DNA from: Macrostomum lignano
Taxonomy: Eukaryota
Direction of reading: 5' to 3'
Assembly (NCBI GenBank): GCA_002269645.1
Contig: NIVC01001975.1
Span: forward strand, 1 to 64,000
DNA length: 64,000 bases
Under the pieces are notes generated by a model. It had not been told where the DNA came from and did no database searches. It worked only from the letters and a program-made list of their open reading frames with translations. How positions within the stretch are numbered: the first letter of the stretch is position 1; each line of letters begins with the position of its first letter. Below are positions 1,626 to 56,440 of this stretch, in pieces. A program made the translations under genes and the position numbers.

Positions 1626-1799
1626 CGCAATGGCAGCTTGGGAAATGGGACGGCTCGATGCGCCATTGGGGCAGCGCCATCTAGCAGCTGAGCCAGCAAT
1701 TAAGTCCCTGCCGAGGACTTTAGTCGCTTAGCAGGCCACTGCTGAGACTGCCTCCGCACCTGTACAGACATCTGCACCCAAGTGCCCGCAAAGGGATCC

Positions 1800-15454: not shown

Positions 15455-16229
15455 TATGCCTAAATAAAATTCACGTTTGACTAAAATCACTCATGGAATG
15501 GTTTATGACCATAGACATAAAACCAAAGCGCCACAGTCCCAGAGCCATATAGTCTTTGGCCCAAACCAGAAGCAGGTACAGGCTGCAGCTTGAGGGGATC
15601 TCGGATATGTAGAGTCTGAGATCCTGAGCTACTGATTTCAATACAATTTGCGGGACGCTTTGTAGTTAATTATTTTGAAAACTCAGGATTCCAGCAAGGG
15701 TAAGTAATAACTGCAATAACTGCAAAATAGCAGTTATATAGAATAGAATATGCTATAATTAGTTACAAGATTATGTATTTTTATTGGAAGCATAATAACA
15801 TGGTGAATTGGAAGTTTTTCCGAACTCCCAATAAATTCCTCGATACAAATATCCTATACGTGAATTCAATCCATATTGAATATTGGACAGAAATATTCTA
15901 ATTCGCTTTAGATTAAGGCTGCCCTGCCATGCTATAAAATAGTTTCATCTTTTGAATCTGTTATAAAGATTTTGACGAGACATATCGTAGTAACTATAGG
16001 TGGCCTACGGCTACATACGAAGGTCACTCTTAGAATGAAGTTTTTAGAATGGAAAGGTTATGATGCTTATGACGAAACAAGACTCTAAACTTTTTCACAG
16101 CGACTCCCTCCAGCAGCAATGTACTTCCCCATTTGACGAAACCATTGCTCAACGACAAAAAAGCGTGTGAAAAGGCCGAGTTTGTCAGGGTGTCAACAGC
16201 TGTTGTACTGCGAAGTTGGTGAAGCACCG

Positions 16230-16398
16230 TACCTTTTCTCGCGTGAGCCACGCTTCCAGTGGCTCTGCTCTTCTGTAGCAGACGTAAAACTGTTGATGGC
16301 GACCTCCCGAAGTGGTTCGCAACTGTTCGAAGAGTACAACCTGCTTCCAACATTCCGACTGCTCGCCATCTTTCCGCGTCTGTCATCTGTTGAACCAT
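16230..16398 (-). pseudogene. Tc1/Tc3-type transposase N-terminal HTH fragment
   Basis: MTDAERWRAVGMLEAGCTLRTVANHFGRSPSTVLRLLQKSRATGSVA is a paired-like HTH. Similarity stops after about 55 aa. Confidence 0.75.
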
Positions 16399-16817: not shown

Positions 16818-19800
16818 TTAAAAACTGTCCTGATACCTCATCGGCTTCTTGATGAGTCGCCCCTTGGCTGTGCGATATTCGATCTGATCAGATGCAGAGG
16901 CCGGCTGTGCTGAGGCCGGCTGCGCTGAGGCCGGCTGCGCTGAGGCCGGCTGCGCTGAGGCCGGCTGCGCTGAGGCCGGCTGCGCTGAGGCCGGCTGCGC
17001 TGAGGCCGGCTGCGCTGATTCGTCGAGATTTTGATGTACATCTAGTTCTTGGTGATATTCGTCAAAAGGAACTCCAATTTTCCGTAGTCTGAGAAATCGT
17101 CTGTTCCGTCTGAGAAGCTGACCTGTCTCCGTGCGGACGAAAAAAGATCTTCTGGAGTCGCCCACCTCACTGTCGACCTCAGCCGCCATCCAGTCTCGGC
17201 GACCACGCTGAAGCCACACAGGGTCGCCAACGTTCAGTTGATGAAGCGGGCGAGCACGGCGATTGTAAAGTTGTGCCGCTCGGTTGCGCTGATTCTCGAA
17301 AGCCTCAATACTAGCTTGAATGTGGGTCTCTTTAGGACGAAGATCTTGGAAAGTCGCTGGCAGATCACACCGCAGTTTTCTTCCGAATGCCATCTCAGCA
17401 GGACTCGGAAAGCCGCTTCCAATCGGTGTGTTTCGATAGTGCAACATAGCCATTTCAAAGCTTTGCCCAGTCTCGTGGCACTTCTTGATCATGTTCTTGG
17501 CTGTCTGCACGTACCGCTCGGCTTTCCCATTAGACTGCGGGTAGGTCGGACTGGAGGTCCTGAGCTTTACTTTAAAGATCGATAGCATTAGCTGGAACTC
17601 GCGAGACGTGAATTGTGGACCACCATCACTGATAAATTTCTCCGGGACTCCCAAGTTCTGAAAGTGCTCGCGGAGAATTTGTACGACAGCTGATGTCGTA
17701 GTTGACCGCAGTCGGTTAATGCTCATCCAGTGACTGTAGAAGTCTACGTAGAGCAAATAGGTTGCACCAGAGAACTCAAAAAGATCCGCTGAGCATACTT
17801 GAAACGGAAAATCCGGAATATCCACTGACATTAGTGTCTCCTTTGACTGTGTCTTCATGTTTCTTTGACACGACTCACATTGGCCTACTGTGCGCTCGAT
17901 GCAGTTGCGCATGCCAGGCCAATAAAAATAATCTTTCGCCTTTAGGTCCATTTTGACTATGCCTGGATGGCCGGCGTGTAAAATGTTGAGAACGCTTTTT
18001 CTTGAGTTTCCTATGGGTACGTAGATTCGTTCTTTAAGACAGAGCAGGCCTGCTACCTCGGTCAGATCATGCCGAACGTCCCAGAAAACCTTTAAGTCTT
18101 CAGACAGGCTCGATCGACGCTTCGGCCACCCATCTCGGATCACATCCAGCAGCCGCATGCTTGTCGCATCCGATGATGTTTCAGTGCGTATCATGTCGAG
18201 AATTTCAGCGTCACCACTGAAGCAGCGCTCCACTGAAAGGACCTGCCCATCTAGAGCTTCTTGAAGCTGCACTGCCAAGTAGTCCGTCGGCCCGTATGCT
18301 CGGCTCAGAGTGTCGGCCACGTACAACTCCTTTCCTGGTGTGTACTTGACCCGGATGTCATACGGTTGCAGCTGTAATAATAGGCGCTGAATTCTGGGAG
18401 TAGTGTCACAGAGCGCCTTTTTGAAGATTGCTTCCAGTGGCTTATGATCACTCTGTACTTGAACTGTGCGGCCCCACAGGTATCGATGAAACTTTTTGCA
18501 GCCGTATACAATGGCTAGCAGTTCTTTTTCGATTTGTGCGTATGCTTTTTGAGCGTCTGTCATGGCTGACGAGGCAAACTCTACCGGTCGGTCGTCTTGA
18601 AGTAGAACAGCTCCGATGCCACTCTTGCTTGCATCCACTGAGACAACCACCGGCTTGCTGACATCAAATGTTGCTAGAACACGCTCAGAGCAGAGTTCAG
18701 TGATGATGGAGTCGTACGCCTTGTCATGCTGGTTCAGCCAGCTCCACATAACGTCCTTTTTTAGTAGATGTCGCAGTGGCTCTGCAGTCGAAGAAAGGTG
18801 TGGGCAGAACTTAGCAAGATACGTTACACAACCCAAAAATCGTCTCAGCTGTTCTCGCTTAGCTGTTATGCTCTCAAAATCATTCGGCCGAGTCATTTCT
18901 TTTATTGCCTTAACTTTTCCTGGGTCTGCTCTTAACCCATTCGATCCAAGGATATCGCCTAAGTAGTTCAGCTCTGTTAAGCCAACTCTCATCTTCAGTG
19001 GGTTCAATGTGACATTTGCACGGCTGCACTGCTCAAGAAGGTCACGGACGGCTTGTTCATGCTCCTCGACAGTTTGACCCCACACGATAATATCGTCGAA
19101 AAAATTCTTAGCATTTTTCAAGTGATTTGTGACATTTTCCTCCATACGCTTCTGGAACACCTCGGGAATTGAGCTCAGTCCATACGGAACACGTTTCCAG
19201 CGGTAACGGCCAAACGGTGTGTGAAAAGTGGTCAGAAACGAGCTTTGTTCGTCCAGTTTGAGTTGATGAAAACTCTCATTTGCGTCAAATGAGCTGTACA
19301 TTACAGCTCCAGCTGTTGCTATTCGAACCTCCTCCGCTGTCGGTATCGGGTGGTATTCTCTAATTATGAATCGGTTCAGATAGGTTGGGTCGAGACACAG
19401 TCTCATTGATCCATCCTTTTTCCATACTATGGCGACATTCGAGACCCATTGTGTTGGCTCATCAACCCGAACGATGGTGCCATCTTTCTCTAGTCGTTCA
19501 AGCTCGCACTTTAGAGGCTGGTATGCTGCAAATGGCACCTTTCGAGGTGGCTGAACCTTTGGAACAGCGCTATCGCTTAGCCGAATCGTATAAGGTTGAC
19601 TCATACAGCCTACGCCGTTAAAAACTTTGGCGTAACTAGTTTTCAGTTGGCCTGGAGTGAGCTGTGATGGCTTAGTGACCTTAGCGAAAGTCTTTGGACT
19701 TTGTTGGATACTAAATAACTTTTTGATTAATTCTAGGTCTTTCAGTGCAGACTTGTAGCCAATTATTGGCGTCGAGTTCTCGCCTACTACCACTAGCTGA

Positions 19801-20900
19801 ATTCGGACATTCTTTTTGCAGGGTGATGACACAGTCAAGTGTGTGACACCTACAACATCCAGCTGCTGCTTATTGTACGTGATCAGTGTCCATGAGGTTG
19901 GCTCGATCTGAGCCTTTGGAGCCAGCTGAGTTAGGTGCCTCAATGGTATGACGTTGACGTCTGCCCCTGTGTCGACCTTGGACAGCAGCTTTCTGCCAGT
20001 CTCTTTAACAGTCAAACTCACCATCATTGGGGAATTGCTAGTTGGTGGATTATCCTGGCCGCAGTTTGGCTTCTCCAGCGTCATGATCGATGCCGACATA
20101 GGAACTAGAGACTCGTCTTCTTCAACCAGCTCATTAATCTTCTTGGACGAGCGGCACATTGTTGCGAAGTGATTCTTTCGACCACAGGTGCTGCATTGCT
20201 TTCCATAGGCCGGACACTTGCGTCGTTCATGTTGGTAACCACAGTAACCGCAGCTGCGTCCCGGTGGCTTGAATTGGCTGGCTGGCATCCTGTGTTGACC
20301 TTGGACCGCGTCCACTGATGAAGATGTCGCACTGAGTGGAATTCGACTTGGCTGTGCTAAGGCTCGAGCTTGTCGCTTTGATGTCTCAGAAGCTCGTCCG
20401 ATTTGAATCGCACGGTCCAGTGTGAGCTTTTCCTCCCTCAACAGTCTTTCTCGAAGTGCTGGGTCGTTGCTCCCGATGACAATTTGATCTCTAATGACGC
20501 TGTTGACAATATTCTCCCGATTTGCTGGCTCTTCGTAGTTGCATCGTTTTATTAACTGACGCAGAGAGTTAACAAACTGATCGAATTCCTCTGCATCACC
20601 TTGGACTCTAGTCCTGAACTGATAGCGCTCAAATGTCTCGTTAGAGTTTGGCTCACAATATTCTTGAAATTTTGCGACTACCTGCTCGTATGTCTTTACT
20701 TCCTCTGCTGCAAATGTTGAATAGATGTCTTGCCCTTCGGCTCCTAATGCAGTAAGAAGTGTTGCAATTTTCACTTCGTCGTCCTCGCTCGTCTTCTTGG
20801 TAGCCTTCATATAGAGATCAAACGCCTTGTTCCATCTTCGCCAATTCTCCGCACGGTTTGTATCAAAGGCGATAGGTTCTGGAGGCCTCAGACCATCCAT
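16818..20900 (-). CDS. gag-pol: Intact Gag-Pol polyprotein, 1360 aa
   Basis: Uninterrupted ORF with two Cys/His knuckles (CGYCGYQH...C; CSTCGRKNHFATMC), VDTGAD protease, FFDD RT, DAS..GIGAVL RNase H, H-x3-H...CESC and SDGGPQF / SNGKAER integrase. Confidence 0.96.
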   Translation of the reverse strand: MDGLRPPEPIAFDTNRAENWRRWNKAFDLYMKATKKTSEDDEVKIATLLTALGAEGQDIYSTFAAEEVKTYEQVVAKFQEYCEPNSNETFERYQFRTRVQGDAEEFDQFVNSLRQLIKRCNYEEPANRENIVNSVIRDQIVIGSNDPALRERLLREEKLTLDRAIQIGRASETSKRQARALAQPSRIPLSATSSSVDAVQGQHRMPASQFKPPGRSCGYCGYQHERRKCPAYGKQCSTCGRKNHFATMCRSSKKINELVEEDESLVPMSASIMTLEKPNCGQDNPPTSNSPMMVSLTVKETGRKLLSKVDTGADVNVIPLRHLTQLAPKAQIEPTSWTLITYNKQQLDVVGVTHLTVSSPCKKNVRIQLVVVGENSTPIIGYKSALKDLELIKKLFSIQQSPKTFAKVTKPSQLTPGQLKTSYAKVFNGVGCMSQPYTIRLSDSAVPKVQPPRKVPFAAYQPLKCELERLEKDGTIVRVDEPTQWVSNVAIVWKKDGSMRLCLDPTYLNRFIIREYHPIPTAEEVRIATAGAVMYSSFDANESFHQLKLDEQSSFLTTFHTPFGRYRWKRVPYGLSSIPEVFQKRMEENVTNHLKNAKNFFDDIIVWGQTVEEHEQAVRDLLEQCSRANVTLNPLKMRVGLTELNYLGDILGSNGLRADPGKVKAIKEMTRPNDFESITAKREQLRRFLGCVTYLAKFCPHLSSTAEPLRHLLKKDVMWSWLNQHDKAYDSIITELCSERVLATFDVSKPVVVSVDASKSGIGAVLLQDDRPVEFASSAMTDAQKAYAQIEKELLAIVYGCKKFHRYLWGRTVQVQSDHKPLEAIFKKALCDTTPRIQRLLLQLQPYDIRVKYTPGKELYVADTLSRAYGPTDYLAVQLQEALDGQVLSVERCFSGDAEILDMIRTETSSDATSMRLLDVIRDGWPKRRSSLSEDLKVFWDVRHDLTEVAGLLCLKERIYVPIGNSRKSVLNILHAGHPGIVKMDLKAKDYFYWPGMRNCIERTVGQCESCQRNMKTQSKETLMSVDIPDFPFQVCSADLFEFSGATYLLYVDFYSHWMSINRLRSTTTSAVVQILREHFQNLGVPEKFISDGGPQFTSREFQLMLSIFKVKLRTSSPTYPQSNGKAERYVQTAKNMIKKCHETGQSFEMAMLHYRNTPIGSGFPSPAEMAFGRKLRCDLPATFQDLRPKETHIQASIEAFENQRNRAAQLYNRRARPLHQLNVGDPVWLQRGRRDWMAAEVDSEVGDSRRSFFVRTETGQLLRRNRRFLRLRKIGVPFDEYHQELDVHQNLDESAQPASAQPASAQPASAQPASAQPASAQPASAQPASAQPASASDQIEYRTAKGRLIKKPMRYQDSF
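16899..17018. repeat. 15-bp coding tandem repeat x8 encoding (AQPAS)n
   Basis: GCTGAGGCCGGCTGC units lie in the integrase C-terminal tail. Confidence 0.92.
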
Positions 20901-26893: not shown

Positions 26894-27325
26894 CTACCAA
26901 GGTGACACGCAGGATGGCTCGCTCATAACCCGGTACGCAGAGTTGCTGGACCACGGCTGGTAGAGAACCTTGAAGTTGCAGCGGAACTCGGAGGCGCCTG
27001 GCAAGTTCACTGGGGAGCACTTGGCCAAGTTCTCCAGGTTCTGCTCCTTGTGGTTATCGCACTCGGTGGCGCGCAAAACGACGCTGAATTCGTAGAAGAC
27101 GCCGGCAACCACCTGTTTGGTGCCGCTCATGAAGTTGAGCACTGCGTAGAATCTGGAGTGGCTGCTCAGCCGGTTCATCTCCAGCGTAGCCATGTCCAAG
27201 GCGCCGCGGAACTCAGGCGATTTAACGTCTGCCTCTGTCAGAGGGCTCTTGCCGCCGATCAGGGAGCCAATGGCGACGCCGGCCAGAGAGAAGGCAACTA
27301 CAGACAGCAGAATTACGCACTTCAT
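26894..27325 (-). CDS. Secreted type-2 cystatin, intronless, 143 aa
   Basis: Signal peptide, N-terminal GG, QVVAG, PW, and 4 Cys in type-2 positions. Confidence 0.95.
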   Translation of the reverse strand: MKCVILLSVVAFSLAGVAIGSLIGGKSPLTEADVKSPEFRGALDMATLEMNRLSSHSRFYAVLNFMSGTKQVVAGVFYEFSVVLRATECDNHKEQNLENLAKCSPVNLPGASEFRCNFKVLYQPWSSNSAYRVMSEPSCVSPW

Positions 27326-30240: not shown

Positions 30241-32364
30241 TTTAGCGTATTTAGAATTTACATGCACATAAATGAGCCATTTTTATTTATCGGTTTTCCA
30301 TGCGTCACTTGACATAGTTAGAGAACAATTTATTTACCTATGGTAGTCGGGTTTTAAGTCCATGGCTAGCAAATCCTAAACTTCAAAGCTAAGCTACGCA
30401 AATCCTAAGCTTCAAATTCAATTGGTCTCAGCTGTGTTGATCGAAACAAGTAAACTTTTTTGCTTCTGACGGATGCATACAGTAAGTGTTAGCAGTGTTC
30501 GTTTGTGTAAATGTTTGCTAGGAGTCTTTAGCTCAACACTATGCCTGAAGAGTCAATCTTTTTTGTTTGCTTCTTCCTTCTTCCTTAGTATTCCTCGCTA
30601 CTCCATAAGAGAATGGTGGATTCAACAGGTAAAAATCCTAAAAATAGCAGTTTGCAGAAATCTGTATGCTCTATGCCTGCATTTGTTTTAGTCAGTAACT
30701 GTTTGTTGCCGTTCGACTGTGTCGGCTTGCTTATTGCACTGTTCGATTTTAGACTCGAACGCAAAGCGATTCTGTGAGCTTGACTTAGTAAAGCATCTCT
30801 CTTTTAATACAATTAACACAATCGCGCGACTGCTGTACGGCTTAGATTTGAGTTATCTTCAAAAAATGAAAATAAAGTGCTCAACGCCAATTTCCCCAAA
30901 AGCTAGTAAATAGCTATGCTATTGTTTCAAGCATTCGAAATAGATGCATTTGAAAGACTACACTAGCTAGTTTCCGCTTGAAAGCAACTGATTGAATTGC
31001 TTAAAAGCAGCGGCCGATCTGAGGACGGGTTTTGATAGGCAACAATATTCCTTCTCAACAATAATCCATAGGTCTTCCATGACCCCAAGTATCTCTTGCT
31101 CTAGCTGTCTTGGACTCAAATTCAGCACAGTTTAATGATATGTCATTTTAAACTATTATAATCCAGATCACACAGCCAATTGAATATTTGTTTTAACCAA
31201 TTTGTCCCGGACTATCTATAGACTATCCAATTAATTTCATTTTGTTAATCTGCCGCAGTTCGCCAATAGGAGTTGACGCAAAATTTTTTTGGCGGCAATT
31301 AGCGGATTTCACCTATAAATAGCTTGGCATTAGTTGCTATCCTTGATCCGGTATGACTTCTCCGGTTTTCTCGACTAACGCCCGCCTCCCACCCCCCCCC
31401 AAAAAAAATGTCAAGCTGCATCAAAAGGCGCTGGTATCCAAAAGTATAGTTTAGGAGCCTGGAAGCAAATATTTGCTTGGGACGAAGCCCCATTAAACTC
31501 TTCCGGGCCTGCCTGCATGCAGACTTTCTCCTTTGGTAAATTTCCTGACGGGGCAATGAGAGCAATGAGAGACTAAAAAAGAAAATTGAATTGCTCCAAC
31601 AGTTCCGGGAAGAAAGTTAAACTACCTCTAAAAGAGAAATTACGCACCTTTTGTTCATTTTTTGTTTCTAGCTGCATGTAAATTCGAGTAGACAGACGGA
31701 GTCGGAGGAGGGAACTGCATGGCAACCAGCAATGCAATTGCAATTGAGAAGTGGGCCTTTAAACTTGAACAATTCTATAGATTCTCACCCATCTACCTGC
31801 GTTAAAAGCGCTTACCGAGCAGTCTTCCAGGGTGAAGCATCCTGTGCACTCAGCAGATTGAGTAGAAGAGGATTCTAAATTCGCAAATGCTCTCGAAACT
31901 ATAGGGAAGAATGCATTGCAGCCTGTCAATCAGAGATGGTTATAGAGTCAGAACAATGCTAAAATTTTCAACTAGGAATCCCAGGTTTTCTATGATCTAT
32001 TATACCTTTTCTGAATTGATGATTTCTCCCAAGCAATGCAGATTGTCTTCACCAGCCTGCACGTTATTAACGTGCATTCACAGGTAGAACGTGTACCCTA
32101 CTTGAAGGCAGAATAGTGAATTGGCCAAATTTCTTCATTAAGAAAAGGTCCAAAAGAAGTCAAAATTTTGCTGCGATTCAAACCGCAAAGATGATCGTTT
32201 TATTTGTCATAACAGGGCTGCGTAATTAAGAATTTTGGTTTGTTTTGCAAAATAGCGAAAACATTCCGCCAAGTTTTGGTGTCGTTCTTTCGTTCAGTTT
32301 AGTCGCAAATTAGGGGGTGAGACTTGCTTGGTTCTTGCGAATTCGAAATTCTCTTAAGGTCGCT

Positions 32365-34471
32365 TCATTGCCTGTGCAGCATCCACTCCCTGCTCCGCTT
32401 CAGCCCCATCAGGGCGTCGAACAGATGCTTGGAGTCGCCTCGCTTGATCTCCATCACCCCGCCGCCTGTGACGTAACGGACTGGCCAGCCGCGCTTGCTG
32501 GTGGGTGAGCGGGTTCACGAGTGAGGTTGTGAGCGGGTTCACGAGTGAGCTTGTGAGCGGGTTCACGAGTGAGGTTGTGAGCGGGTTCACGAGTGAGGTT
32601 GTGAGCGGGTTAACGAGTGAGGTTGTGAGCGGGTTCACGAGTGAGGTTGTGAGCGGGTTCACGAGTGAGGTTGTGAGCGGGTTCACGAGTGAGGTTGTGA
32701 GCGGGTTCACGAGTGAGGTTGTGAGCGGGTTCACGAGTGAGGTTGTGAGCGGGTTCACGAGTGAGGTTGTGAGCGGGTTCACGAACTGGGAGCAGAGTCG
32801 GCAGAGTAATGATGGGGCAGAGTGATGATGGGGTAGAGTGATGATGGGGCAGAGTGATGAAGGGGCAGAGTGATGAAGGGGCAGAGTAATGATGAGGCAG
32901 AGTAATGATGAGGCAGAGTGATGATGGGGTAGAGTAATGATGGGGTAGAGTAATGATGGGGCAGAGTGATGATGGGGCAGAGTGATGAAGGGGCAGAGTG
33001 ATGAAGGGGCAGAGTGATGAAGGGGCAGAGTGATGAAGGGGCAGAGTGATGAAGGGGCAGAGTGATGATGGGGCAGAGTGATTAAGGGGCAGAGTGATGA
33101 AGGGGCAGAGTGATGAAGGGGCAGAGTGATGATGGGGCAGAGTGATGAAGGGGCAGAGTGATGAAGGGGCAGAGTGATGAAGGGGCAGAGTGATGAAGGG
33201 GCAGAGTGATGATGGGGCAGAGTGATGAAGGGGCAGAGTGATGAAGGGGCAGAGTGATGAAGGGGCAGAGTGATGATGGGGCAGAGTGATGAAGGGGTAG
33301 AGTGATGAAGGGGCAGAGTGATGAAGGGGCAGAGTGATGATGGGGCAGAGTGATGATGGGGCAGAGGGATGATGAGGCAGAGTGATGATGAGACAAATAT
33401 TTAGGAAAAACTAAGATAAGACAGTTGCAAATCTGAATGCAAGGCTTTCTCCAAACACTGAAAAGTACAAAAGAAAATAGGCAGACAGAATGGCAGCGAA
33501 GCACCATTGCAGAGTGTCATGCGGAAGTCGCCCCCATAATTATATGATAACTCCTAAAAGCGGATTATGATATTTCGATGTCGCATTAAAATGTGCTATT
33601 TTTCAGCCTCCAAAGTTGCTGGCCCACAATTAGACGGAGTGTGCAGCCTCCAAGTCACAGAGAGGCTAATGGATCACACCAGATTCCCGTGGGAAATCAT
33701 AACCCGGAGCTTACTGACTCGCTTTGTGTATGGGGGGTGCTCTCTGCTCGGAGTAGCGGGTGATGTTACAAGAGGTGGAGAGAGAGTTCAACCTGTTTAG
33801 ACTGAGGCTTGCGACTCTAAACTTGTTTTGGTGGCTCACTAGATGTCTATATTTTATCTCGTTATTAAGGTGAAATTTTACGCGAGCATGCTGCTTATGC
33901 TCGGAGCTAATTGCGTGCTGAAGATATTACCTGAGCAAAGAACTCGACTCGAGCCTGTTTACTAGGATTCGTTCCTATACCTGCGAGTAATTCCCGAAAG
34001 TCAGGTTCTGTGTTGTAGAAATTTCTTATATTCAGAGTCCTCCATTAATGAAATATCCCATGTTCAAAAGACTCCCATTCTTGAAATATCCCATATTCAT
34101 AAGTCTCCCATTCTTGAGATATCCCATATTCATAAGCGTCCCATTCTTGAGATATCCCATATTCAAAGTTTCCCACTCGTGAAAAATACCTCATTTAAAA
34201 AAGTGCTTCTTCTAATGGAATCACCCCTATTTCCAGAGCAGTTCCACCATATAAAACCCCGAGTCCCACTTCTCCCCAACTGTTGCAGGACAGCTTTTAA
34301 TCGACAAAAGCAGCAGAATTGTCGGCTGCACGAGGGGGCATGGAGATTAAGTTGAGCTGACAATTCAAATTAGTTGCTAGGATAAATAATTCAGAGCCTG
34401 TACTCACTAGAGCGCGTCGTGCTCCTCGATGTCGTCGAAGTCCCGTGGCGGGGCAGCGGAGCCAAGGCCAA
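32365..34471 (-). CDS. Partial spliced gene, neuropeptide-precursor-like; exons 34408-34471, 33715-33801, 32365-32497; first exon unresolved
   Basis: Three GT-AG exons join in phase and give ..GLGSAAPPRDFDDIEEHDALYLNRLNSLSTSCNITRYSEQRAPPIHKASH-KR-GWPVRYVTGGGVMEI-KR-GDSKHLFDALMGL-KR-SREWMLHRQ*. The first and last exons are GC3-rich. Confidence 0.55.
32503..32785. repeat. 24-bp minisatellite, about 11 copies, intronic
   Basis: GTGAGCGGGTTCACGAGTGAGGTT units. Confidence 0.97.
32790..33390. repeat. 16-bp minisatellite, about 37 copies, intronic
   Basis: GGGGCAGAGTGATGA(A/T) units. Confidence 0.97.
34045..34165. repeat. About 32-bp tandem repeat, about 4 copies
   Basis: CTCCCATTCTTGAGATATCCCATATTCATAAG variants. 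Confidence 0.8.
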
Positions 34472-35086
34472 CTGAAATTGAATTTGAGCAGCGCTTTCAG
34501 CCGCCAGTCCCGTTGGAACTCAAAAGCACAGGAAAGAAATACTTTGAGAGCGTGACTTTTTTCTTGTGAATTCAATTCATTCAGGTATGGCGATGCCGCG
34601 ACCCCGCCCTCTCTTGCTTCTCATCTTGCATTCTGACACCTCATCCTGAATGCATGCATTGCAGCAAATTCCCCGAGAATTATTCAATTATTCATGGATC
34701 AAAAAATCGATGCTCCCGCGAAGGAGAGGAAGAGAAAAGGGGGGGGGCGGCGGCAGAAATTATTACCGCCTCCTGAAGCGCGCGTCTCCAATTCGCACCT
34801 AATCGCCTGCGTGTTCCGCATTTCCCTCGGCCATTATACCGGCTGCTGATGCCGCTACTAAAAGCAGAATTCCATTGAATCGGCACCCCGAGTGCTTGAT
34901 CCTACTCTGGGAGAAATTGGCTTTTATTCTATAGATTGAAATTGCTGGGGACACTTCAAATGCGAGCGGCTTGGCCTCTGCTGTTGGGCAGAAATTATGC
35001 ACAGCATCTGACACATGTTTGGTTTTTCCTGACACACTTGCTGCTGACCCCAGCTGTCTATTCTGACGGCTGTCCGGGCACCAGGC

Positions 35087-35285
35087 TCCTGACTGCTGAC
35101 TGCTGACTGCTGACTGCTGACTGCTGACTGCTGACTGCTGACTGCTGACTCCTGACTGCTGACTCCTGACTGCTGACTGCTGACTCCTGACTGCTAACTG
35201 CTGACTGCTGACTGCTGACTCCTGACTCCTGACTCTTGACTCCTGACTGCTGACTGCTGACTGCTGACTCTTGACTCCTGATTCC
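35087..35285. repeat. 7-bp microsatellite (CTGACTG/CTGACTC)n
   Basis: Direct reading. Confidence 0.95.
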
Positions 35286-35375
35286 TGCTCAAGGACACAA
35301 ATTGTTCCGATCAGATTGAGAGTCGAACCCCCGACCTTTCAGTCCGACGCACTAACCACTGGTCTACAACCCCCC
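35285..35375 (-). mobile_element. Truncated tRNA-derived SINE head
   Basis: Reverse complement reads GTTGTAGACCAGTGG (A box)...GGGTTCGACTCT (B box)...GGAACAATTTGTGTCCTTGAGC, the same family as 13303. Confidence 0.72.
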
Positions 35376-36779
35376 CCCCAGGCTACAAGCCTCTTAGAAC
35401 CTTGGTACTATATATTAATTAATTGCAAGAACACTCTGTAAGCTAAGATAAAACCTCTATCTGATCGACTCAAGCATCAGAGCAGCAGATGAGCAGGCAG
35501 TCAGTCTCTCGAAGCCGAGATAAAATTGGCACTTAAGATGAATTGAGAGACACGATAAAATCAAACCATAGCTGCAACTCGACTGATGTTGGGACGGGGG
35601 GAAATCGGAAAGCGAGGACCGCAGGCAGTCTCATTACCGCGCCTCCAATAATTCTCTTCAATGCATTTAATCCCCTCCTGTTTAGCGATTGCTGTGTGTC
35701 TCAGAGAATGAGAACGAGACGGAAACGGATACAGTGTCGCCGCGGACCCGCCTCCTTCGTGAAGCCGCTCCGCCCACGTCTCGCAGATCGTTTTCTGCAT
35801 GGCTGTCCACCCAGCCACCCACCGACCGAGAATCCGAGATCATAAAAAAACGGGTAATCGACTTGCTTCCATTTCTGTCAATGCCTGATCATGGACTCCG
35901 GAACTGTACTCATCGATCGGCTCCTAATTCTGCCTTTCCTAGATTTGTTTATTTAAGTCCCTTCGGCTGGCCGAGTGTAAAAAACACACCATGTAGAAAG
36001 ACTTGTTTTGGCTTGTTTTGAATTTAAATCTTATATACTCTTTCTTTTAATCATAGTTTCTAATCCTAATCTTATTTAATCTTATTTAAGTTAATTTTTA
36101 AAATAATTATTAGTTAGCTCTAAGTTAATTCCTAATTTTGCTAATTTCATTAATCCTAATTAAATTTTTTAGTCAATTTCTTAGTTAATTTTTGGTTAAT
36201 ACTTCACTGATTTTTATTTAATTTCTTACTTAATTAATTTTTATAGTTACTATTTGTTCATAATTTTTTATATCTTTATATTAAAATAATAATAATTTAA
36301 TTTAATAATTAGCACTACTAAGTTCCCTTACCGAGAGGGTGCTGATTTTCATATGTTATAATATTTCCCTGTACATAAAGAAAGAAGGGCAGAAGGAAAC
36401 AAAAGAAAAATGCTAATCGATAAAAAAATTTTTGACGTCACAAACGTTGAAATAAGTATCGCACACAAACAGAATATTCAAACAATTTTCCGGTATTACA
36501 TGAAGCGAGAAAATTTAGAATTTCCATTTTGTCTCTTTTCTCGTGAGTCATTACGTAAAATTCTTTGCCCTCTGCAGTAGGGTTTATAAAAAATCGAACC
36601 TTTATTCGAGATTTACTGCTAAGACAATTATCACAGGGAGCACTATTAAATTAATTTCCACTATTAAATTAATTTCCAAGAACACTTAAACAGGAAGTGA
36701 ACTTCACTTTCTACTCCCAATGGCACTTTGGGCTGGTGCTGTTCTCGTAAGGGATCTTTGGTTGTAGGCAAGTTGAATA

Positions 36780-37137
36780 GATCTGATATCTAATCGGGTC
36801 AGATCTGATATCTAATCGGGTCAGGTCTGATATCTAATCGGGTCCGATCTGATATCTAATCGGGTCAGGTCTGATATCTAATCGGGTCAGGTCAGATAAC
36901 TAATCGGGTCAGATCTGATATCCTAATCAGGTCAGATCTGATATATAATCGGGTTAGGTCTGATATCTAATCGGGTCAGGTCTGATATCTAATCGGGTCA
37001 GATCTGATATCTAATCGGGTCAGGTCTGATATCTAATCGGGTCAGATCTGATATCTAATCGGGTTAGATCTGATATCTAATCGGGTCAGATCTGATATCT
37101 AATCGGGTTAGATCTGATATCTAATCGGGTCAGATCT
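36780..37137. repeat. 22-bp minisatellite, about 16 copies
   Basis: AGATCTGATATCTAATCGGGTC units. Confidence 0.96.
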
Positions 37138-37539
37138 ACATGTAATTGGGAAAGCTACTCTGAGAAAACTCAAATAAAAGTCCTAATTAACTCAGAAATC
37201 ATTCACAGATTATATAATTTGTAAATTTGGGAACAGTATAAGTTTAAGAAAATATTTTTAAAGATGCAAAAAAGAACGCAAAACTCACCCAGAGCGATGA
37301 GGCAAAATAGAAAGCAAAACCTTGCACTTGGCGACATGTTGCAGATCGAGACTTGGGGGGTCCTGTGTGACAAGCCAACTTAACAAGCAAAAAGCGAACT
37401 GAGGTTCTTTTAAAGCGTTGAAAAAGCGCTGCTTCAAGAAGAAAGTGTATGCAGCGGTTTTCTCTCTGGCCTAGCTTGTAGCAGCTAAATGCAGTCTCCT
37501 GCTTGGTCCCCATCTCCATCCAAGCCTGCGATTGGCTGG

Positions 37540-38365
37540 CTGAATTGGAGTGAACAGATCATTGAGATTGTGCTGATTGGAGTGAACAGAGCACTGAGAT
37601 GGTGCTGATTGGAGTGAACAGATCACTGAGATGGTGCTGATTGGAGTGAGTACAGCACTGAGATGGTGCTGATTGGAGTGAACAGATCACTGAGATGGTG
37701 CTGATTGGAGTGAACAGAGCACTGAGATGGTGCTGATTGGAGTGAACAGAGCACTGAGATGGTGCTGATTGGAGTGAACAGATCACTGAGATGGTGCTGA
37801 TTGGAGTGAACAGATCACTGAGATGGTGCTGATTGGAGTGAGTACAGCACTGAGATGGTGCTGATTGGAGTGAACAGAGCACTGAGATGGTGCTGATTGG
37901 AGTGAACAGATCACTGAGATGGTGCTGATTGGAGTGAGTACAGCACTGAGATGGTGCTGATTGGAGTGAACAGAGCACTGAGATGGTGCTGATTGGAGTG
38001 AACAGAGCACTGAGATGGTGCTGATTGGAGTGAACAGATCACTGAGATGGTGCTGATTGGAGTGAACAGAGCACTGAGATGGTGCTGATTGGAGTGAACA
38101 GAGCACTGAGATGGTGCTGATTGGAGTGAACAGAGCACTGAGATGGTGCTGATTGGAGTGAACAGAGCACTGAGATGGTGCTGATTGGAGTGAACAGAGC
38201 ACTGAGATGGTGCTGATTGGAGTGAACAGAGCACTGAGATGGTGCTGATTGGAGTGAACAGAGCACTGAGATGGTGCTGATTGGAGTGAACAGAGCACTG
38301 AGATGGTGCTGATTGGAGTGAACAGAGCACTGAGATGGTGCTGATTGGAGTGAGCAGAGCACTGA
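37540..38365. repeat. 32-bp minisatellite, about 26 copies
   Basis: CTGATTGGAGTGAACAGAGCACTGAGATGGTG units. Confidence 0.97.
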
Positions 38366-38743
38366 GCAGACTTAATTGGTAGCTGAGCAGTGGATTTCAT
38401 TTCAACTATATTCAAATTTGAAGAGATTTTAAAACAAATGCGAATCAAAGTTTCTGAGACAAACAAAGCAGTAAACTTTTGAAAACCGATTTTTATTGAA
38501 CTTGAAAAGTTTCAGTTGAAAAATTTAGTAACATGCGGGAAATAGCCACTCCAAGCTATTACTCGTATATTATAACAGCTCTCTTTTCCCTTGGCATATT
38601 AAATTTTTCATATTTTTATGCTACTGATATCCGCAGCTATTAGTAGTATCGAGATATTTTTTATCACTATGTGTGAACGATCCAGTTCAATGTCTAAGCT
38701 GTATTTATGAATCAAGATGCCTAAACAAGAAAGTTTTCTTTTA

Positions 38744-41700
38744 TCACGTGGGCTTCGCTTCAACCCGTTTTCGCCTGCAAAAGCAGTTAATAATACAATT
38801 GTGCAGCAATTCGACCAGCTCAAGCAGAGTCAGCAGAGAACAGCCCAGGAAGAGTCCCAGTAGGCCGCCGGTCTCCGCAAACAAATTGTTGAAGGTGTAG
38901 GCCAGAGTGACTCGCAGCTGATCGGTTTAGAAAATGCGAGTGGTGAACTGAAGTTTTCTGTTCAAAAAAATGCTTAGAAATCAATAAACAGGATAAAAAA
39001 CGGCAAGCAGTGAGGTAGTTGTAAATAAGGCAGATGGGTGAGGGCAGGGAGTGAGGTGGTTGTAAATAAGGCAGATGGGTGGGGGCAGGGAGTGAGGTGG
39101 TTGTAAATAAGGCAGATTGGGTGGGTGCAGGGAGTGAGGTGGTTGTAAATAAGGCAGATGGGTGGGTGCAGGGAGTGAGGTGGTTGTAAATAAGGCAGAT
39201 TGGGTGGGTGCAGGGAGTGAGGTGGTTGTAAATAAGGCAGATGGGTGGGTGCAGGGAGTGAGGTGGTTGTAAATAAGGCAGGGGATGGGGCAGGGAGTGA
39301 GTGGTTGTAAATAAGGCAAGGGATGGGGCAGGGAGTGAGTGGTTGTAAATAAGGCAGGGGATGGGGCAGGGAGTGAGGTGGTTGTAAATAAGGCAGATGG
39401 GTGGGGGCAGGGAGTGAGGTGGTTGTAAATAAGGCAGATTGGGTGGGGGCAGGGAGTGAGGTGGTTGTAAATAAGGCAGATTGGGTGGGTGCAGGGAGTG
39501 AGGTGGTTGTAAATAAGGCAGATGGGTGGGTGCAGGGAGTGAGGTGGTTGTAAATAAGGCAGATTGGGTGGGTGCAGGGAGTGAGGTGGTTGTAAATAAG
39601 GCAGATTGGGTGGGTGCAGGGAGTGAGGTGGTTGTAAATAAGGCAGGGGATGGGGCAGGGAGTGAGGTGGTTGTAAATAAGGCAGATGGGTGGGGGCAGG
39701 GAGTGAGTGGTTGTAAATAAGGCAGGGGATGGGGCAGGGAGTGAGGTGGTTGTAAATAAGGCAGGGGATGGGGCAGGGAGTGAGTGGTTGTAAATAAGGC
39801 AGGGGATGGGGCAGGGAGTGAGTGGTTGTAAATAAGGCAGGGGATGGGGCAGGGAGTGAGTGGTTGTAAATAAGGCAGGGGATGGGGCAGGGAGTGAGTG
39901 GTTGTAAATAAGGCAGGGGATGGGGCAGGGAGTGAGGTGGTTGTAAATAAGGCAGATGGGTGGGGGCAGGGAGTGAGGTGGTTGTAAATAAGGCAGATGG
40001 GTGGGTGCAGGGAGTGAGGTGATTGTAAATTAGGCAGGGGATGGGGCAGGGAGTGAGGTGGTTGTAAATAAGGCAGGGGATGGGGCAGGGAGTGAGGTGT
40101 TTGGAAATAAGTCTGAGGGGTGGGGCAAGGAGTGGGTGGTTGTAAATAAGGCCGAGGGGCGCTGGCTAGTTTCGAGATCAGAGCCAGCTAGAAAGGTTGG
40201 TGCTGACCGGAACTTTAGTTAAGACTCCGTACCTGATCGCTATTAGAGTGCCGACTGCTCAGCCTGACCAGAGAAACTTGGCTGCTTATCAGGCTCGCCA
40301 ACTTTTCAAGCTGTTGCGAGCTGGCGTTGGAGCCGGCCGCGTCTTTCTCGGCGTAGTAGATCTGGAAGAACGGCTTGTCGGTCAGGCTGTCTATGCGAGA
40401 GCGAATCATCTCCATCATGATGTCGGTGAAGGCGGCGAGAGGCCAATCGGAAACGGACCAGTCGATCTGTTAGGTTAATATTGGCATGCTCGTAAATCTA
40501 ATGGTTTTAGTGTGCGATCAAAGACAATTAGTTTGATTTAGACTGTTCTTTATGACCCGCAGGAAGCTGTCAGCAGCTCTCTATGGGAGAAAGCCTCTAC
40601 CCTGTAACTATCTAGAGCTCTACTAAGCTTTTCCTGCTAAGCGCAATACAGATAACCCAAAGTCACCGTATAGCTCAGAGAAGTGCACGGAGACTGATTC
40701 GAGCACGCATCAGACACTTGAGTTGAAATGGCCTTCAAAAGGTCCCTGTTTGCCAATTTCCTGGCCGTCAGGTTGTTCAGCTGATCAACAGTCAGCCCTG
40801 TGGCGTTGTGGCAGCTTCGCAGGTGTCTGAAAGCTGCCGTACGGGGCACCGCCTTGTCTGTGCAGTTCAGCAGGCTCTGCATTCTTCGGGCAAACTCTGA
40901 AATAGTTTTTGATGAGGTGATTGATAGTACCTAACCTGCTCAGGTTTCGAGACATTACTGATATCACTCATCCGATAATCACTCACCAGATAATCACTCA
41001 TCAGATAATCACTCACCAGATAATCACTCACCAGATAATCACTCACCAGATAATCACTCATCAGATAATCACTCACCAGATAATCACTCATCCGATAATC
41101 ACTCACCAGATAATCACTCATCAGATAATCACTCACCAGATAATCACTCACCAGATAATCACTCTCCAGATAATCACTCACCAGATAATCACTCACCAGA
41201 TAATCACTCATCCGATAATCACTCACCAGATAATCACTCACCAGATAATCACTCATCAGATAATCACTCATCAGATAATCACTCATCAGATAATCACTCA
41301 TCAGATAATCACTCATCCGATAATCACTCACCAGATAATCACTCACCAGATAATCACTCATCAGATAATCACTCATCAGATAATCACTCATCAGATAATC
41401 ACTCACCAGATAATCACTCATCAGATAATCACTCACCAGATAATCACTCATCAGATAATCACTCATCAGATAATCACTCATCAGATAATCACTCATCAGA
41501 TAATCACTCATCAGATAATCACTCATCAGATAATCACTCATCAGATAATCACTCACCAGATAATCACTCATCAGATAATCACTCACCAGATAATCACTCA
41601 CCAGATAATCACTCACCAGATAATCACTCATCAGATAATCACCCATTTGGTAATCACAGGTGCACTCAGGTATTGCAGACATTGCAGATAATCACAGACA

Positions 41701-42731
41701 AGCGACTCACCTGTATAATAGCAGAAAGCATCCGAGTAATTATAATCGTACAGGGAATCATCATAAGGATTAACAAACTGCACCCGGCTCTGCCTAGAGT
41801 TCGGCATGCACTGTCCAGCGAACTGGCTCTCCAGGTAAGACACCTGTTGCATAGTGATTCGAACCTCGGCCATTGTGCCCGACCTAATCAACAGGGAAGT
41901 GGACCAAGGTGTCGGATAAGTGCCCGGCTCGACTAGGAACAGCCGCAGGCCGCTCTCAACAAAGACGTTCCAGCCGAGATCCAGGCTCCATTCGGCCGGG
42001 TAGGCTTTGTGGATTCGGCCGAGCACGCTCAATGGAATGTACACCTGGTTGGAGTCGACCGTGTAGCTGAGCAGCTGCGAGTCCACGGTCAGCGCCAAGT
42101 GCAGGTAGGCGTCGGGCTGGCGAAGCCGAGCTGCAGCGGCCGAGTCGAGGCCGAGCCGGGCGCAGCGCAGGTAGGCGGGATGGTAGAAGTTGGAGAACTG
42201 CAGCCGGCCAGTCTGGTTATCTCGAATCGTACCGCTGACGTCGCCCTCGATGGAGGCGAAGGCGATCATCTGGCTGAGGCTGTGCCCCAGCAAGTCGGCG
42301 GCCAAGTTGAAAGGCAACGAATTGACGACGTACTTCAGCAGGTCTACGGGGGTCAGGCCAGTCAGGTTGTTCAGCGTGGCTAGCGTGGGCGCCAGCTGGC
42401 GGCGCAGGGCATCGGCTTGGACGGCGGAGAGGCCGACAGAGCGGCTGCCGGACACCGGGTTGCTGCCGCAGACGTACAGGTCAGGGAATCGGAAAGGAAC
42501 CTCGAACGCGTAGATAGCCGTGTCTCGTTTAGCACTGAGCAGTTTGGTCACGGCGTCGCTAAATGTGATGCCGAACCAGACTAGCAGGCCGAGGAAGCTG
42601 GAGAGCCACATCAGTTTGAGGTAGACTGGCCGATCGGAGCTCGATATCCTTGGCAAGCCGTGGGCCGTAGTTTCGGCCAGATAGGCGTGAAGCACTGCTG
42701 TCAGTGTCTTCGTCTTGGACTGTGTCGGCAT
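38744..42731 (-). CDS. DEG/ENaC (amiloride-sensitive Na channel family) subunit, about 552 aa; exons 41711-42731, 40667-40896, 40233-40466, 38744-38917
   Basis: TTAHGLPRI (HG motif), TM1, FPDLYVCGSNP, FYHPAYLRC, GLRLFLVEPG.YP, SDWP, and TM2 LFAETGGLLGLFLGCSLLTLLELVE. All three introns are GT-AG and phase-consistent (1,0,0). Confidence 0.93.
39005..40150. repeat. 38-42-bp minisatellite, about 28 copies, in DEG/ENaC intron 3
   Basis: GGGAGTGAGGTGGTTGTAAATAAGGCAGATGGGTGGGTGCA and variants. Confidence 0.97.
40965..41645. repeat. 15-bp minisatellite, about 45 copies, in DEG/ENaC intron 1
   Basis: GATAATCACTCA(C/T)CA units. Confidence 0.97.
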
Positions 42732-43044
42732 GCCTAACTCGAATACAGCCTTTAGCAACTTTGGAAGCGGAGCTCTGCAAGTTCCTGCGCGAGTCAACCG
42801 GTATTTACTGATCGGAACAGTTGGCCCCTGCAAGGTGTTGCAGGTGGTGGGGCTTTTGTAGGCAAATAGAGATATATCCTCACGACTGCGGAAAGCAGGT
42901 GCGTGTGCATAGAAGTCTCTCGAATCAATACACCAATCTGAGGGATTAGTAGATTCATATCGCTTTGGAATTATTGCACGGAGCAGCAGAATCTGGTTTT
43001 TTGAGTCACTTCTCAAAAATTGACTATCGTTAAGCATGTACACT

Positions 43045-43175
43045 TCACTGTGCCTTGGGGGTTGGCCCTCAAGGGTGTTAATTGTACGAGCAGAGCCAAG
43101 CCGAGATTCGAATTCAGCCTCAAATAAATGTGACTGCACTTGAAATCGAGCCTGGACCGCTGGGCTACATCCTCG
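43045..43175 (+). repeat. Dispersed repeat of about 130 bp; second copy at about 60808-60935
   Basis: CTGTG.CTTGGGGGTTGG..CTCAA...GTTAATTG.ACGA.CAGAGCCAAGCCGAGATTC...GACTGCACTTG.AATCGAGCCTGG.CCGCTGG is shared by both loci. Confidence 0.8.
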
Positions 43176-43601
43176 CACAACAGAGATTCGAACAACTGAA
43201 GTTTCTCTAGAACTCTGCTTTTTGCCGAGCATTTCATGAAAAAATCAGCTCGATAAACTTGCGAGTGCAACTCAAACGAAACAAACAAGCAACAAACACG
43301 GAGTATAAGTAGTCTGGTGCGAATAAATAGCTATTAATTAAGAAATAATCAAATCACAATACACTAAATCTCTAATGTTTGTTTGTTTGTTTGTATGTTT
43401 GTCCATAACGCTCTAGAGATTTCACTATTTCTATTTGCTGTCTAAATGAGCTTTTTCTTCGATGAATTAAGAAAGGCCTAGCGTTTGTATTGAGGGTCTC
43501 AGTTGACTTGCTCATTTAAAAAAAAATTAAGTTGCACTTGCTCTCGCGATCGAGGACCGAACAACTATTTTTCGTATAATATCTGCTACTTACGGGAGAC
43601 T

Positions 43602-45151
<1,550 letters not shown>

Positions 45152-45164: not shown

Positions 45165-45885
45165 TTCTACCGATCGACCGAGGACTACTAGCGTCTGCTA
45201 CCGACCGAGGACTACTAGCATCTGTTACCGATCGAGGGTTATTAGCATTTGCTACCGATCGATGGCTACTAGCCTCTGCTACCGATCGAGGGCTAATAGC
45301 ATCTGCTACCGATCGAGGGTTATTAGCATTTGCTACCGATCGATGGCTACTAGCATCTGCTACCGATCGAGGGCTAATAGCCTCTGCTACCGATCGAGGG
45401 CTAATAGCCTCTGCTACCGATCGAGGGCTAATAGCCTCTGCTACCGATCGAGGGCTAATAGCCTCTGCTACCGATCGAGGGCTAATAGCCTCTGCTACCG
45501 ATCGAGGGCTAATAGCCTCTGCTACCGATCGAGGGCTAATAGCCTCTGCTACCGATCGAGGGCTACTAGCATTCGCTACCGATCGAGGGCTAATAGCATG
45601 CGCTACCGATCGAGGGCTAATCGCATCTGTTGCCGATCGAGGACTAATAGCCTCTGCTACCGATCGAGGGCTACTAGCATTCGCTACCGATCGAGGGCTA
45701 ATGGCATGCGCTACCGATCGAGGGCTAATCGCATCTGTTGCCGATCGAGGACTAATAGCCTCTGCTACCGATCGAGGGCTACTAGCATTCGCTACCTATC
45801 GAGGGCTAATAGCATGCGCTACCGATCGAGGGCTAATAGCCTCTGCTACCGATCGAGGGCTAATAGCATTCGCTACCGATCGAAG
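45165..45885. repeat. 27-bp minisatellite, about 26 copies
   Basis: CTACCGATCGAGGGCTAATAGCCTCTG units. Confidence 0.96.
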
Positions 45886-45889
45886 ACAA

Positions 45890-46720
45890 GTTATATTTTC
45901 GAAAGTCGCTACTGTTGCACGTTCGGTTTGTTGCCAGTCCATATTTGATAGTGTCACTTTGCTGACTGTACTGCGAAGGTATAGTGCAGTAGCCACAGCC
46001 TCAGCCCAGAATTCCTTGCCAAGACCAGCATGCGCAATCATTGACCTAGCTGCATCCACCAAGGTTGTGTTAATCCTTTCTGCAACTCCATTCTGTTCTG
46101 AGGAATATGGCACAGTAGTTTCATTAATTATTCCGTTTTGGAAACAGAAGGCTTCGAATTAGCCGGATGCATACTCTCCTCCATTATCAGTTCGATTAAC
46201 CTCTATAGATTTATCTGCTCAGTTTGTGACTAGCGCTTGAAAATTCTTGAGTTTGTCTAAAACTATCGACTTGTTTTTTTCAGAAAATCGACAGAACAGT
46301 AGCGCGAGCTGTCATCAGTGATGTGACAAAGCATTTCGCATCTCCAATTGATGTGGTTTGCATTGGGCCGCACACATCGCTGTGATTCAATAGTCCAATA
46401 GTCCGTTGGACATTAAGCTCTCGGCCTTCTTAAATGATTTTCTGTGCATTTGCTTTCCACGCATGCCTTACAAATTGAGGTGCCGACAGCCTGCATATTG
46501 CTCTTATTCAACAGCAACAACTAAACTTCCTCGAATAAGTCATTTTAGAGCTTGTTCACCCGAGTTTCCATAGCGCTGATGTCATAATTCAATTCTGTTG
46601 CATCTCGCGACAGTTGCTACTCCGTTAGCTATGGGAACTCCTTTGAGTTTGTAAAGTCTTCCAATTTTCATGGCTTCTCCAGCAACATTTCCACTTTTGT
46701 CGTCACGAACGAACTTTGTC
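45890..46720 (-). mobile_element. Ty1/copia integrase fragment (pseudogene)
   Basis: GRLYKL pre-integrase region, DVCGPM, RTDNGGE and PYSSEQNGVAERINTTLVDAARSM...FWAEAVATALYLRS. Confidence 0.88.

Positions 46721-55919: not shown

Positions 55920-56440
<521 letters not shown>

Follow-up and report, generated by a model that had tools for sequence, protein, structure and literature searches.

Peptides of the planarian 1020HH and EYE53 prohormones, as well as some SPP peptides, have been confirmed by mass spectrometry (MS) and are non-amidated, and expression of the 1020HH genes, whose peptides were sequenced by MS, maps to the cephalic ganglia and nerve cords (Collins et al. 2010, PMC2953531). 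The named members of this 1020HH/NPP-27 family are Smed-1020HH-1, Smed-1020HH-2, Dugesia japonica 1020HH and Schistosoma npp-27. Smed-1020HH-1 reads ...ENFDDLESNSDYM-KR-YSYLKGGIRW-KK-..., Smed-1020HH-2 reads ...YDSLLEELNDYDPIY-KR-QSYLTGGIRY-KK-QVPG-KR-YLTGGIRY, and Schistosoma npp-27 reads ...PPNFRTFDLEDDYPEI...KR-VPPYITGGIRY-R (Collins et al. 2010, PMC2953531). Generic non-amidated invertebrate prohormones (planarian SPP, EYE53 and pedal-peptide-like precursors) are likewise small and secreted, with several dibasic sites, an acidic spacer and peptides of 9-16 residues. Here we describe a gene of the same build, Mlig028524 of Macrostomum lignano, which lies on the minus strand at 37457-32199 of a 64,000-nucleotide stretch of contig NIVC01001975.1 (assembly GCA_002269645.1; hereafter the window, to which all coordinates refer). 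We conclude that Mlig028524 is a real, already annotated but uncharacterised gene that appears prohormone-like, with putative processing and expression. A preliminary description of this DNA had called the gene unannotated; GenBank and UniProt in fact both list it, under ‘hypothetical protein’ or ‘Secreted protein’, and what is new here is the putative prohormone assignment of that uncharacterised protein.

Mlig028524 has three small coding exons, which are separated by introns of 2.8 kb and 1.9 kb packed with minisatellites and are too short to have appeared among the open reading frames (ORFs) listed for the window. Exon 1 (37289..37337) opens with the ATG, encodes MSPSARFCFLFCLIAL and stops after one base of a Val codon, at a phase 1 donor, G/GTGAGT. 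Intron 1 (34472..37288) is followed by exon 2 (34408..34471; acceptor tttcag/TT, donor TA/GTGAGT, phase 2), which encodes the signal-peptide end and the acidic spacer, (V)GLGSA/APPRDFDDIEEHDAL(Y). Beyond intron 2 (32498..34407), exon 3 (32365..32497) encodes (Y)KR-GWPVRYVTGGGVMEI-KR-GDSKHLFDALMGL-KR-SREWMLHRQ up to the TGA at 32367-32365, in a frame of 49 codons from stop to stop. The codons of the 15-mer GWPVRYVTGGGVMEI occupy 32446..32490, and the dibasic codons flanking it lie at 32496-32491 and 32445-32440. Untranslated regions (UTRs) extend over 37338..37457 at the 5′ end, where the upstream limit is approximate, and over 32199..32364 at the 3′ end, which closes on an AATAAA polyadenylation signal (32204-32199). 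The transcript is about 550 nucleotides long. All four splice sites are canonical, with GTGAGT donors and CAG acceptors, and match the M. lignano consensus of GT[G/A]AG donors and CAG acceptors (PMC8629364).

The splice product of these exons is identical to PAA62076.1/PAA79739.1 (hypothetical protein BOX15_Mlig028524g1/g2), with Gly at residue 18. A UniRef entry named ‘Secreted protein’ (P0001; 81 amino acids, MSPSARFCFLFCLIALVSLGSAAPPRDFDDIEEHDALYKRGWPVRY...HRQ) is the S18 variant; tblastn against the window placed its residues 1-16 at 37337-37290 and its residues 39-81 on exon 3, both at 100% identity. The gene model is further supported by the agreement, base for base, of window positions 24365-45337 with NIVC01001975.1 of GCA_002269645.1. 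This assembly was annotated from a transcriptome built out of RNA-sequencing reads under genome guidance (StringTie/TACO plus de novo assembly), in which ORFs were called by TransDecoder (Wudarski et al. 2017, PMC5730564), and because the annotation was made in this way the junctions 37289/34471 and 34408/32497 rest on transcript evidence. The same coding sequence (CDS) was called in two independent annotations, those of the ML2 and Mlig_3_7 assemblies. Two further models inform the 5′ end: the N-termini of a GenBank partial model (P0006) and a UniRef entry (P0002) are the translated 5′ UTR, and transcripts therefore start near 37455-37460. Since no AG acceptor stands immediately upstream of ~37457, this end is probably a transcription start and not a trans-splice site. 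The name given to P0002 (A0A1I8FFZ6), ‘FGE-sulfatase domain-containing protein’, was rejected as lacking Pfam support. P0002 is a frame-shifted model whose N-terminus is 5′ UTR plus out-of-frame exon 1, and whose C-terminus is exon 3 in the +1 frame past an indel.

The preliminary description had chained three exons in phase on the minus strand to give ...VGLGSAAPPRDFDDIEEHDALY[LNRLNSLSTSCNITRYSEQRAPPIHKASH]KRGWPVRYVTGGGVMEIKRGDSKHLFDALMGLKRSREWMLHRQ-stop. All three segments are present with AG/GT borders, and the first (true bounds 34471-34408) and last (32497-32365) are genuine exons that match public M. lignano proteins at 95-100%. The 87-nucleotide segment placed between them, at 33801-33715, occurs in none of five public protein models, and the junctions that it implies, 34408/33801 and 33715/32497, are used in no public, transcript-derived model. 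P0001 skips it: the terminal TA of exon 2 and the first C of exon 3 form a Tyr codon, giving ALY-KR. Intron 2 contains 19 chance cassettes that run from AG to GT in phase without a stop, four of them with YAG/GTRA sites, and 33801-33715 belongs to those four. Being one of 19 chance cassettes, and having neither a public model nor a counterpart in the paralog described below, it was rejected as a coding exon. The signal peptide had been sought in a hydrophobic stretch at 34835-34880, which instead falls inside intron 1; the precursor does begin with a predicted signal peptide, but the ATG and signal exon (37337-37289) are 2.4 kb further upstream. That the stretch has no in-frame ATG and only a weak GTATAA donor had been correctly noted.

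Might the cassette, the hydrophobic stretch or both nevertheless be used in an alternative isoform, possibly with an AUG supplied by a spliced leader? The cassette is in phase and stop-free and is bounded by CAG and GTAAG. The M. lignano spliced leader has ATG as its last three bases (PMC8629364), and its trans-splicing to cccag/AGTAGG near 34908 would bring the hydrophobic stretch into frame. A leader joined at 34908-34838 (minus strand) would read M-SRIKHSGCRFNGILLLVAASAA-V-GLGSA, although its donor and acceptor motifs are poor and the joint is unsupported. Several observations count against such an isoform. The cassette residues are in no public protein, though they were part of the query, intron 2 offers 19 equivalent chance cassettes, and the cassette acceptor is preceded by a purine-rich tract. 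GTATAA is a poor fit to the donor consensus GT[G/A]AG, the sequence at the acceptor near 34908 does not match the motif for trans-splicing, [T/C]TNCAG (PMC8629364), and the deep paralog lacks counterpart exons. Conservation of the proposed exons among the gene copies is uninformative here, because those copies are 98-99.5% identical, introns included. We consider use of either segment in an alternative isoform very improbable.

The 81-residue product is MSPSARFCFLFCLIALVGLGSA/APPRDFDDIEEHDALY-KR-GWPVRYVTGGGVMEI-KR-GDSKHLFDALMGL-KR-SREWMLHRQ. Its predicted signal peptide has an n-region MSPSAR, a hydrophobic core at residues 9-17 (Kyte-Doolittle maximum 3.3) and G-S-A at positions -3 to -1. Hydropathy over the 81 residues gave no second hydrophobic segment; the paralog has the same layout. 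UniRef names the S18 variant ‘Secreted protein’. Outside the signal peptide there is no cysteine, and a Pfam scan of the whole product returned no match at E<=10. The 59-residue proprotein contains three KR sites, more than composition-matched shuffles (P = 0.004), and its predicted fragments are neutral or acidic, with monoisotopic masses of 1901.84 Da (APPRDFDDIEEHDALY), 1619.81 Da (GWPVRYVTGGGVMEI), 1402.69 Da (GDSKHLFDALMGL) and 1241.61 Da (SREWMLHRQ). The three peptides predicted in the preliminary description are exactly those of the true product, PAA62076.1, and the small secreted precursor that it pictured, with peptides bounded by KR sites and a spacer that is acidic, stands as the best reading. 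The description was right in kind, with two of its four structural proposals wrong, and the conditions that it had set for its own refutation turned out mostly in its favor. It had also stated that no G-KR amidation signal is present, and the residues preceding the KR sites are indeed Y, I and L. In architecture and size the product matches MS-validated planarian prohormones (Collins et al. 2010, PMC2953531). Possible likenesses to PDF/PDH (L-x-x-x-L-x-G-L), to DH31 (KHLMGL) and to the C-termini of bombesin or tachykinin are not claimed; they would need an amidation Gly, which is absent.

We compared three copies of the gene (L001, L002, which is the window copy, and L006). They are 98-99.5% identical, introns included, and 99% identical in the 3′ UTR, and their CDS spans of 4,973, 7,007 and 5,081 bp differ mainly in minisatellite copy number, which accounts for the different sizes of the copies. 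The reading frame is intact in all three; no difference among them goes beyond synonymous changes or a single conservative one, and the coding substitutions between L001 and L002 are synonymous (3/3). A phmmer search of 1.84 billion cluster representatives returned one further family of paralogs, Mlig025753g1/g2 and Mlig002456g1 (PAA94507.1, PAA73231.1 and PAA58213.1), and no relative outside M. lignano. The paralog reads MSKYALLPVFCSLVIVLAVMDLVTA/LPASQEELDKRSGHEEADGRRSAVS-RR-GWPVRYMAGGGLMEI-KR-AAADAILSAES(K/E)RERLQRRLQELYEEKLRRLGQE and shares with Mlig028524 the signal peptide, acidic spacer, three-exon plan, intron phases and core peptide. Its predicted peptide GWPVRYMAGGGLMEI has a monoisotopic mass of 1635.79 Da. 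At the paralog locus examined (L003) there are three coding exons, with a phase 1 intron 1 inside the G/TT Val codon of the signal-peptide core, placed identically to that of Mlig028524; intron 2 is in phase 2 in both genes. The paralog differs in its length of 103 residues, in having, ahead of the core, an additional DKR site and SAVS-RR segment, and in an unrelated C-terminal tail that is Arg/Glu-rich (ERLQRRLQELYEEKLRRLGQE), probably helical, and provided with a dibasic site in one copy only. The name ‘Promotilin’ attached to a paralog (A0A1I8H4U9, P0009) was not adopted. The Pfam motilin/ghrelin and motilin-associated models are unmatched, and scans of P0009 and the related entry P0010 at E<=10 gave a chance match to TMEM132_C alone (E 0.13-0.22). 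Unlike in the motilin/ghrelin layout, the conserved peptide of the paralog is not adjacent to the signal peptide.

Conservation between Mlig028524 and its paralog is concentrated in a core, [KR]R-GWPVRY[VM][TA]GGG[VL]MEI-KR, in which 15 of 19 residues (79%) are identical, as against 13/50 (26%) before it and 5/38 (13%) after it. When the codons of this core were set against those of the paralog's RR-GWPVRYMAGGGLMEI-KR, there were four synonymous-only changes, and the four amino-acid changes are all conservative (K/R, V/M, T/A and V/L). The dibasic pairs on both sides of the 15-mer (KR or RR before it, KR after it) are kept in all six family proteins. The spacers have diverged around a conserved peptide bounded by dibasic sites, in a small protein with no other domain. 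Such core-restricted conservation is the classic footprint expected of a processed bioactive peptide. It is mainly because conservation is confined to the 15-mer and its dibasic flanks, with the rest diverging, that we favor the reading of Mlig028524 as a small secreted prohormone whose conserved 15-mer would be a bioactive signalling peptide (a neuropeptide or peptide hormone), to which we assign a probability of roughly 0.6.

The same comparison bears on whether the ORF of Mlig028524 could be spurious, its transcript being non-coding or derived from repeats, as its tiny exons sit amid minisatellites that make long spurious ORFs. However, the three gene copies keep the frame with synonymous changes or a single conservative one, the diverged paralog keeps both the exon plan and the core peptide, and the same CDS was called in the ML2 and Mlig_3_7 annotations. 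Conservation in the paralog effectively refutes a spurious ORF, which we regard as hardly credible, even less so than the alternative isoform discussed above.

For the Mlig028524 product we infer the processing, the enzymes and the cell type alike. The preproprotein would enter the endoplasmic reticulum, with the signal peptide cut after ..LGSA. A subtilisin-like prohormone convertase of the PC2/PC1-3 type would then cut after KR40, KR57 and perhaps KR72, and a carboxypeptidase E-like enzyme would trim the basic residues. The predicted products are APPRDFDDIEEHDALY, an acidic spacer; GWPVRYVTGGGVMEI, which is conserved and non-amidated; and two C-terminal peptides that are conserved less well. 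A monobasic cut at R45, where Arg stands at P6, might trim the 15-mer to YVTGGGVMEI, which has a monoisotopic mass of 1024.49 Da. We expect GWPVRYVTGGGVMEI to be the likely bioactive product, a secreted signal that would act on a receptor.

Several points weigh against the prohormone assignment. An amidation Gly, which is common in most but not all invertebrate neuropeptides, is absent at the basic sites of Mlig028524, and secretory cells outside the nervous system, too, process precursors at dibasic sites. Of the KR sites from which the preliminary description argued, those flanking the first peptide are kept across the paralog family, but the third is changed (K->E) in two of three paralog copies, so that support for this site and the last two peptides as functional units is weak. 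The evidence of conservation comes from paralogs within one species only, because searches yielded no ortholog beyond M. lignano: when 5.8 billion proteins were searched twice by word index, once with a single sequence and once with the family profile, M. lignano relatives alone were returned, and a metagenome scan with the family profile returned no relative. The gene family thus appears lineage-restricted as far as accessible databases show. A search of the literature and supplements on M. lignano gave no expression, in situ or peptidomic record of the gene; the ids Mlig028524, Mlig025753 and Mlig002456 are absent from the M. lignano genomics paper texts and supplements searched, and neither they nor the peptide strings had a match in a full-text literature search.

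These points leave room for a second interpretation, in which Mlig028524 encodes a secreted product of a non-neural gland, gut or reproductive tissue (prostate or seminal-fluid, cement, adhesive or intestinal) that is unprocessed or cut by furin-like enzymes and is not a neuropeptide or hormone. The reproductive glands of M. lignano are reported to express many small, lineage-restricted, fast-evolving secreted proteins (PMC5977470, PMC7336406). The confinement of the gene family to M. lignano in the databases searched, the absence of an amidation signal and the presence of a secreted cystatin gene 5 kb downstream are compatible with a product of this kind. However, the conservation of one 15-mer with its dibasic flanks is what processed signalling peptides typically show, unlike structural or seminal proteins, and the likeness to neuronal 1020HH/NPP-27 precursors, considered next, points the other way. 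The predicted fragments, being neutral or acidic, also speak against this interpretation and make a cationic antimicrobial role unlikely. A non-neural gland product is in our judgement an unlikely explanation, yet the most serious competitor to a prohormone.

If Mlig028524 does encode a prohormone, it may in addition be a Macrostomum member of the 1020HH/NPP-27 family, a narrower form of the same reading and not an exclusive one. The Mlig028524 and 1020HH/NPP-27 precursors are collinear: each has 77-83 amino acids, a signal peptide and an acidic spacer ending in Y/M-KR, followed by one or more peptides. The acidic spacer of Mlig028524 contains RDFDDIEE, which is set against ENFDDLES and RTFDLEDD in 1020HH/NPP-27 as a [FY]D[DSL][LI]E-type motif. 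Common to both are non-amidated, dibasic-flanked peptides with Y-[VLI]-[TK]-G-G. The full peptide motif of the family is Y-[LI]-[TK]-G-G-[IVL]-R-[YWF], of which only the first half is found in M. lignano, as Y-V-T-G-G in Mlig028524 and Y-M-A-G-G in the paralog. The Mlig028524 peptide ends in G-G-G-[VL]-M-E-I, in contrast to the G-G-[IVL]-R-[YWF] that defines 1020HH/NPP-27, and it carries an N-terminal GWPVR extension that the family lacks. Mlig028524 has one copy of the motif and planarian 1020HH precursors have up to three; the two extra C-terminal peptides of Mlig028524 have no 1020HH/NPP-27 counterpart.

Similarity measures were divided. Single BLASTP comparisons of Mlig028524 with 1020HH/NPP-27 sequences gave E = 5e-4 and 1e-3, and Smith-Waterman scores against planarian 1020HH had shuffle p values of 0.003-0.01, compared with 0.2-0.55 for three unrelated planarian prohormones (cpp-1, eye53-1 and eye53-2), which lack sequence similarity to Mlig028524. 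Against Schistosoma npp-27 the shuffle p values were 0.08-0.14. Compared with shuffles, the scores of the M. lignano proteins under a hidden Markov model of eight 1020HH/NPP-27 members had p about 0.03-0.06, which argues against membership, as does an hhalign probability of 6% for the M. lignano family against 1020HH, a comparison of few short sequences without usable power. The M. lignano paralog alone showed no significant similarity to 1020HH/NPP-27, and none of the 4-5-mers of the Mlig028524 peptides occurs in the supplements to Collins et al. 2010. On the side of membership, a search of M. lignano for a canonical GGIR[YW] gene found none. The match to 1020HH/NPP-27 was noticed, and the comparison chosen, post hoc among ~25 flatworm peptide families, which also counts against the link.

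Gene structure is similarly double-edged. In S. rodhaini (L004, OX103917.1) and S. mekongi (L005, CM068312.1), npp-27 has an 82-85-amino-acid CDS spread over 18-23 kb in three exons, and its intron 1, in phase 1, splits a Val codon after signal-peptide residue 14, as it does in both M. lignano genes. This shared intron within the signal-peptide core favors a relationship, but phase 1 introns are common in signal peptides in general. Intron 2 differs: that of Schistosoma is in phase 0 and follows directly on the signal peptide, and that of M. lignano is in phase 2 before the KR. Taken together, it is suggestive that Mlig028524 works like 1020HH/NPP-27 and may be distantly related to it; membership is not established, because the family C-terminus G-G-[IVL]-R-[YWF] is absent. 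We put membership forward tentatively, as more doubtful than probable. The fuller proposal, that GWPVRY[VM][TA]GGG[VL]MEI is an undescribed Macrostomum neuropeptide whose precursor is a divergent macrostomorph representative of 1020HH/NPP-27, we judge a little less probable again.

The window is packed with minisatellite arrays, with units of 7-83 bp that are 94-98% identical. Within intron 2 lie a 24 bp array (x11.7, 32505-32784), a 16 bp array (x37, 32800-33388) and a 33 bp array (34028-34184). The first of these ends 8 nucleotides from the exon 3 acceptor, so that its last unit supplies the sequence just upstream of that acceptor. Intron 1 contains a 7 bp array (x28, 35089-35281) and a 22 bp array (x16, 36779-37137). 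Upstream of the gene there are arrays at 37539-38366, 39002-40000, 40867-41691 and 45262-46162, and further ones occupy 54765-55532, 55955-56524, 56789-57193, 59250-59732 and 61508-62077. Minisatellites create long spurious ORFs such as 32354-32782 and 33082-33507.

Among neighboring features, an uninterrupted ORF of 533 codons at 41631-43232 (minus strand), ~4.3 kb upstream of Mlig028524 and on the same strand, matches the Pfam ASC family (amiloride-sensitive or DEG/ENaC channel) at E = 6.5e-13. Some DEG/ENaC channels are peptide-gated, but the adjacency to Mlig028524 is probably a coincidence. The downstream cystatin gene (26894-27325, minus strand) is intronless, encodes a secreted protein of 143 amino acids with a QVVAG motif (Pfam PF00031) and is present in GenBank. 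An exon-sized ORF at 51505-51951 (minus strand) matches zinc carboxypeptidase M14 (E = 2.5e-37). Mobile-element sequence includes an apparently intact gag-pol ORF of 1,360 amino acids (16818-20900, minus strand) of a Ty3/gypsy-type long terminal repeat retrotransposon, with reverse transcriptase, RNase H and integrase domains and a C-terminal QPASA repeat. ORFs at 384-5464 (plus strand) look of retroelement type by eye, although the one scanned, 3993-5120, had no Pfam match, and an ORF at 43753-45058 (plus strand), which another ORF overlaps, has a Pfam RNase H match. A transposase-like helix-turn-helix (HTH_38) ORF lies at 16030-16398 (minus strand), and an ORF at 8883-9386 (plus strand) has a weak PHD-finger match that falls short of the Pfam gathering score.

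A caution follows for gene finding in such DNA: in these repeat-rich introns, chaining exons by phase alone produced two false exons, a cassette and a first exon. To our knowledge, routine stable transgenesis is available in no flatworm other than M. lignano, whose neuropeptides have been catalogued poorly. A peptide gene, once validated, whose promoter region is compact and defined could serve as a marker of a neuron subtype or secretory cell, and its peptide as a ligand for receptor deorphanisation. If the 1020HH/NPP-27 link is true, it would link an early-branching flatworm to a neuropeptide family of planarians and schistosomes that is abundant but of obscure function, and illustrate the extent to which a family of peptides can diverge. 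It would place the origin of 1020HH/NPP-27 at or before the base of Rhabditophora, with the C-terminal pharmacophore replaced in one lineage.

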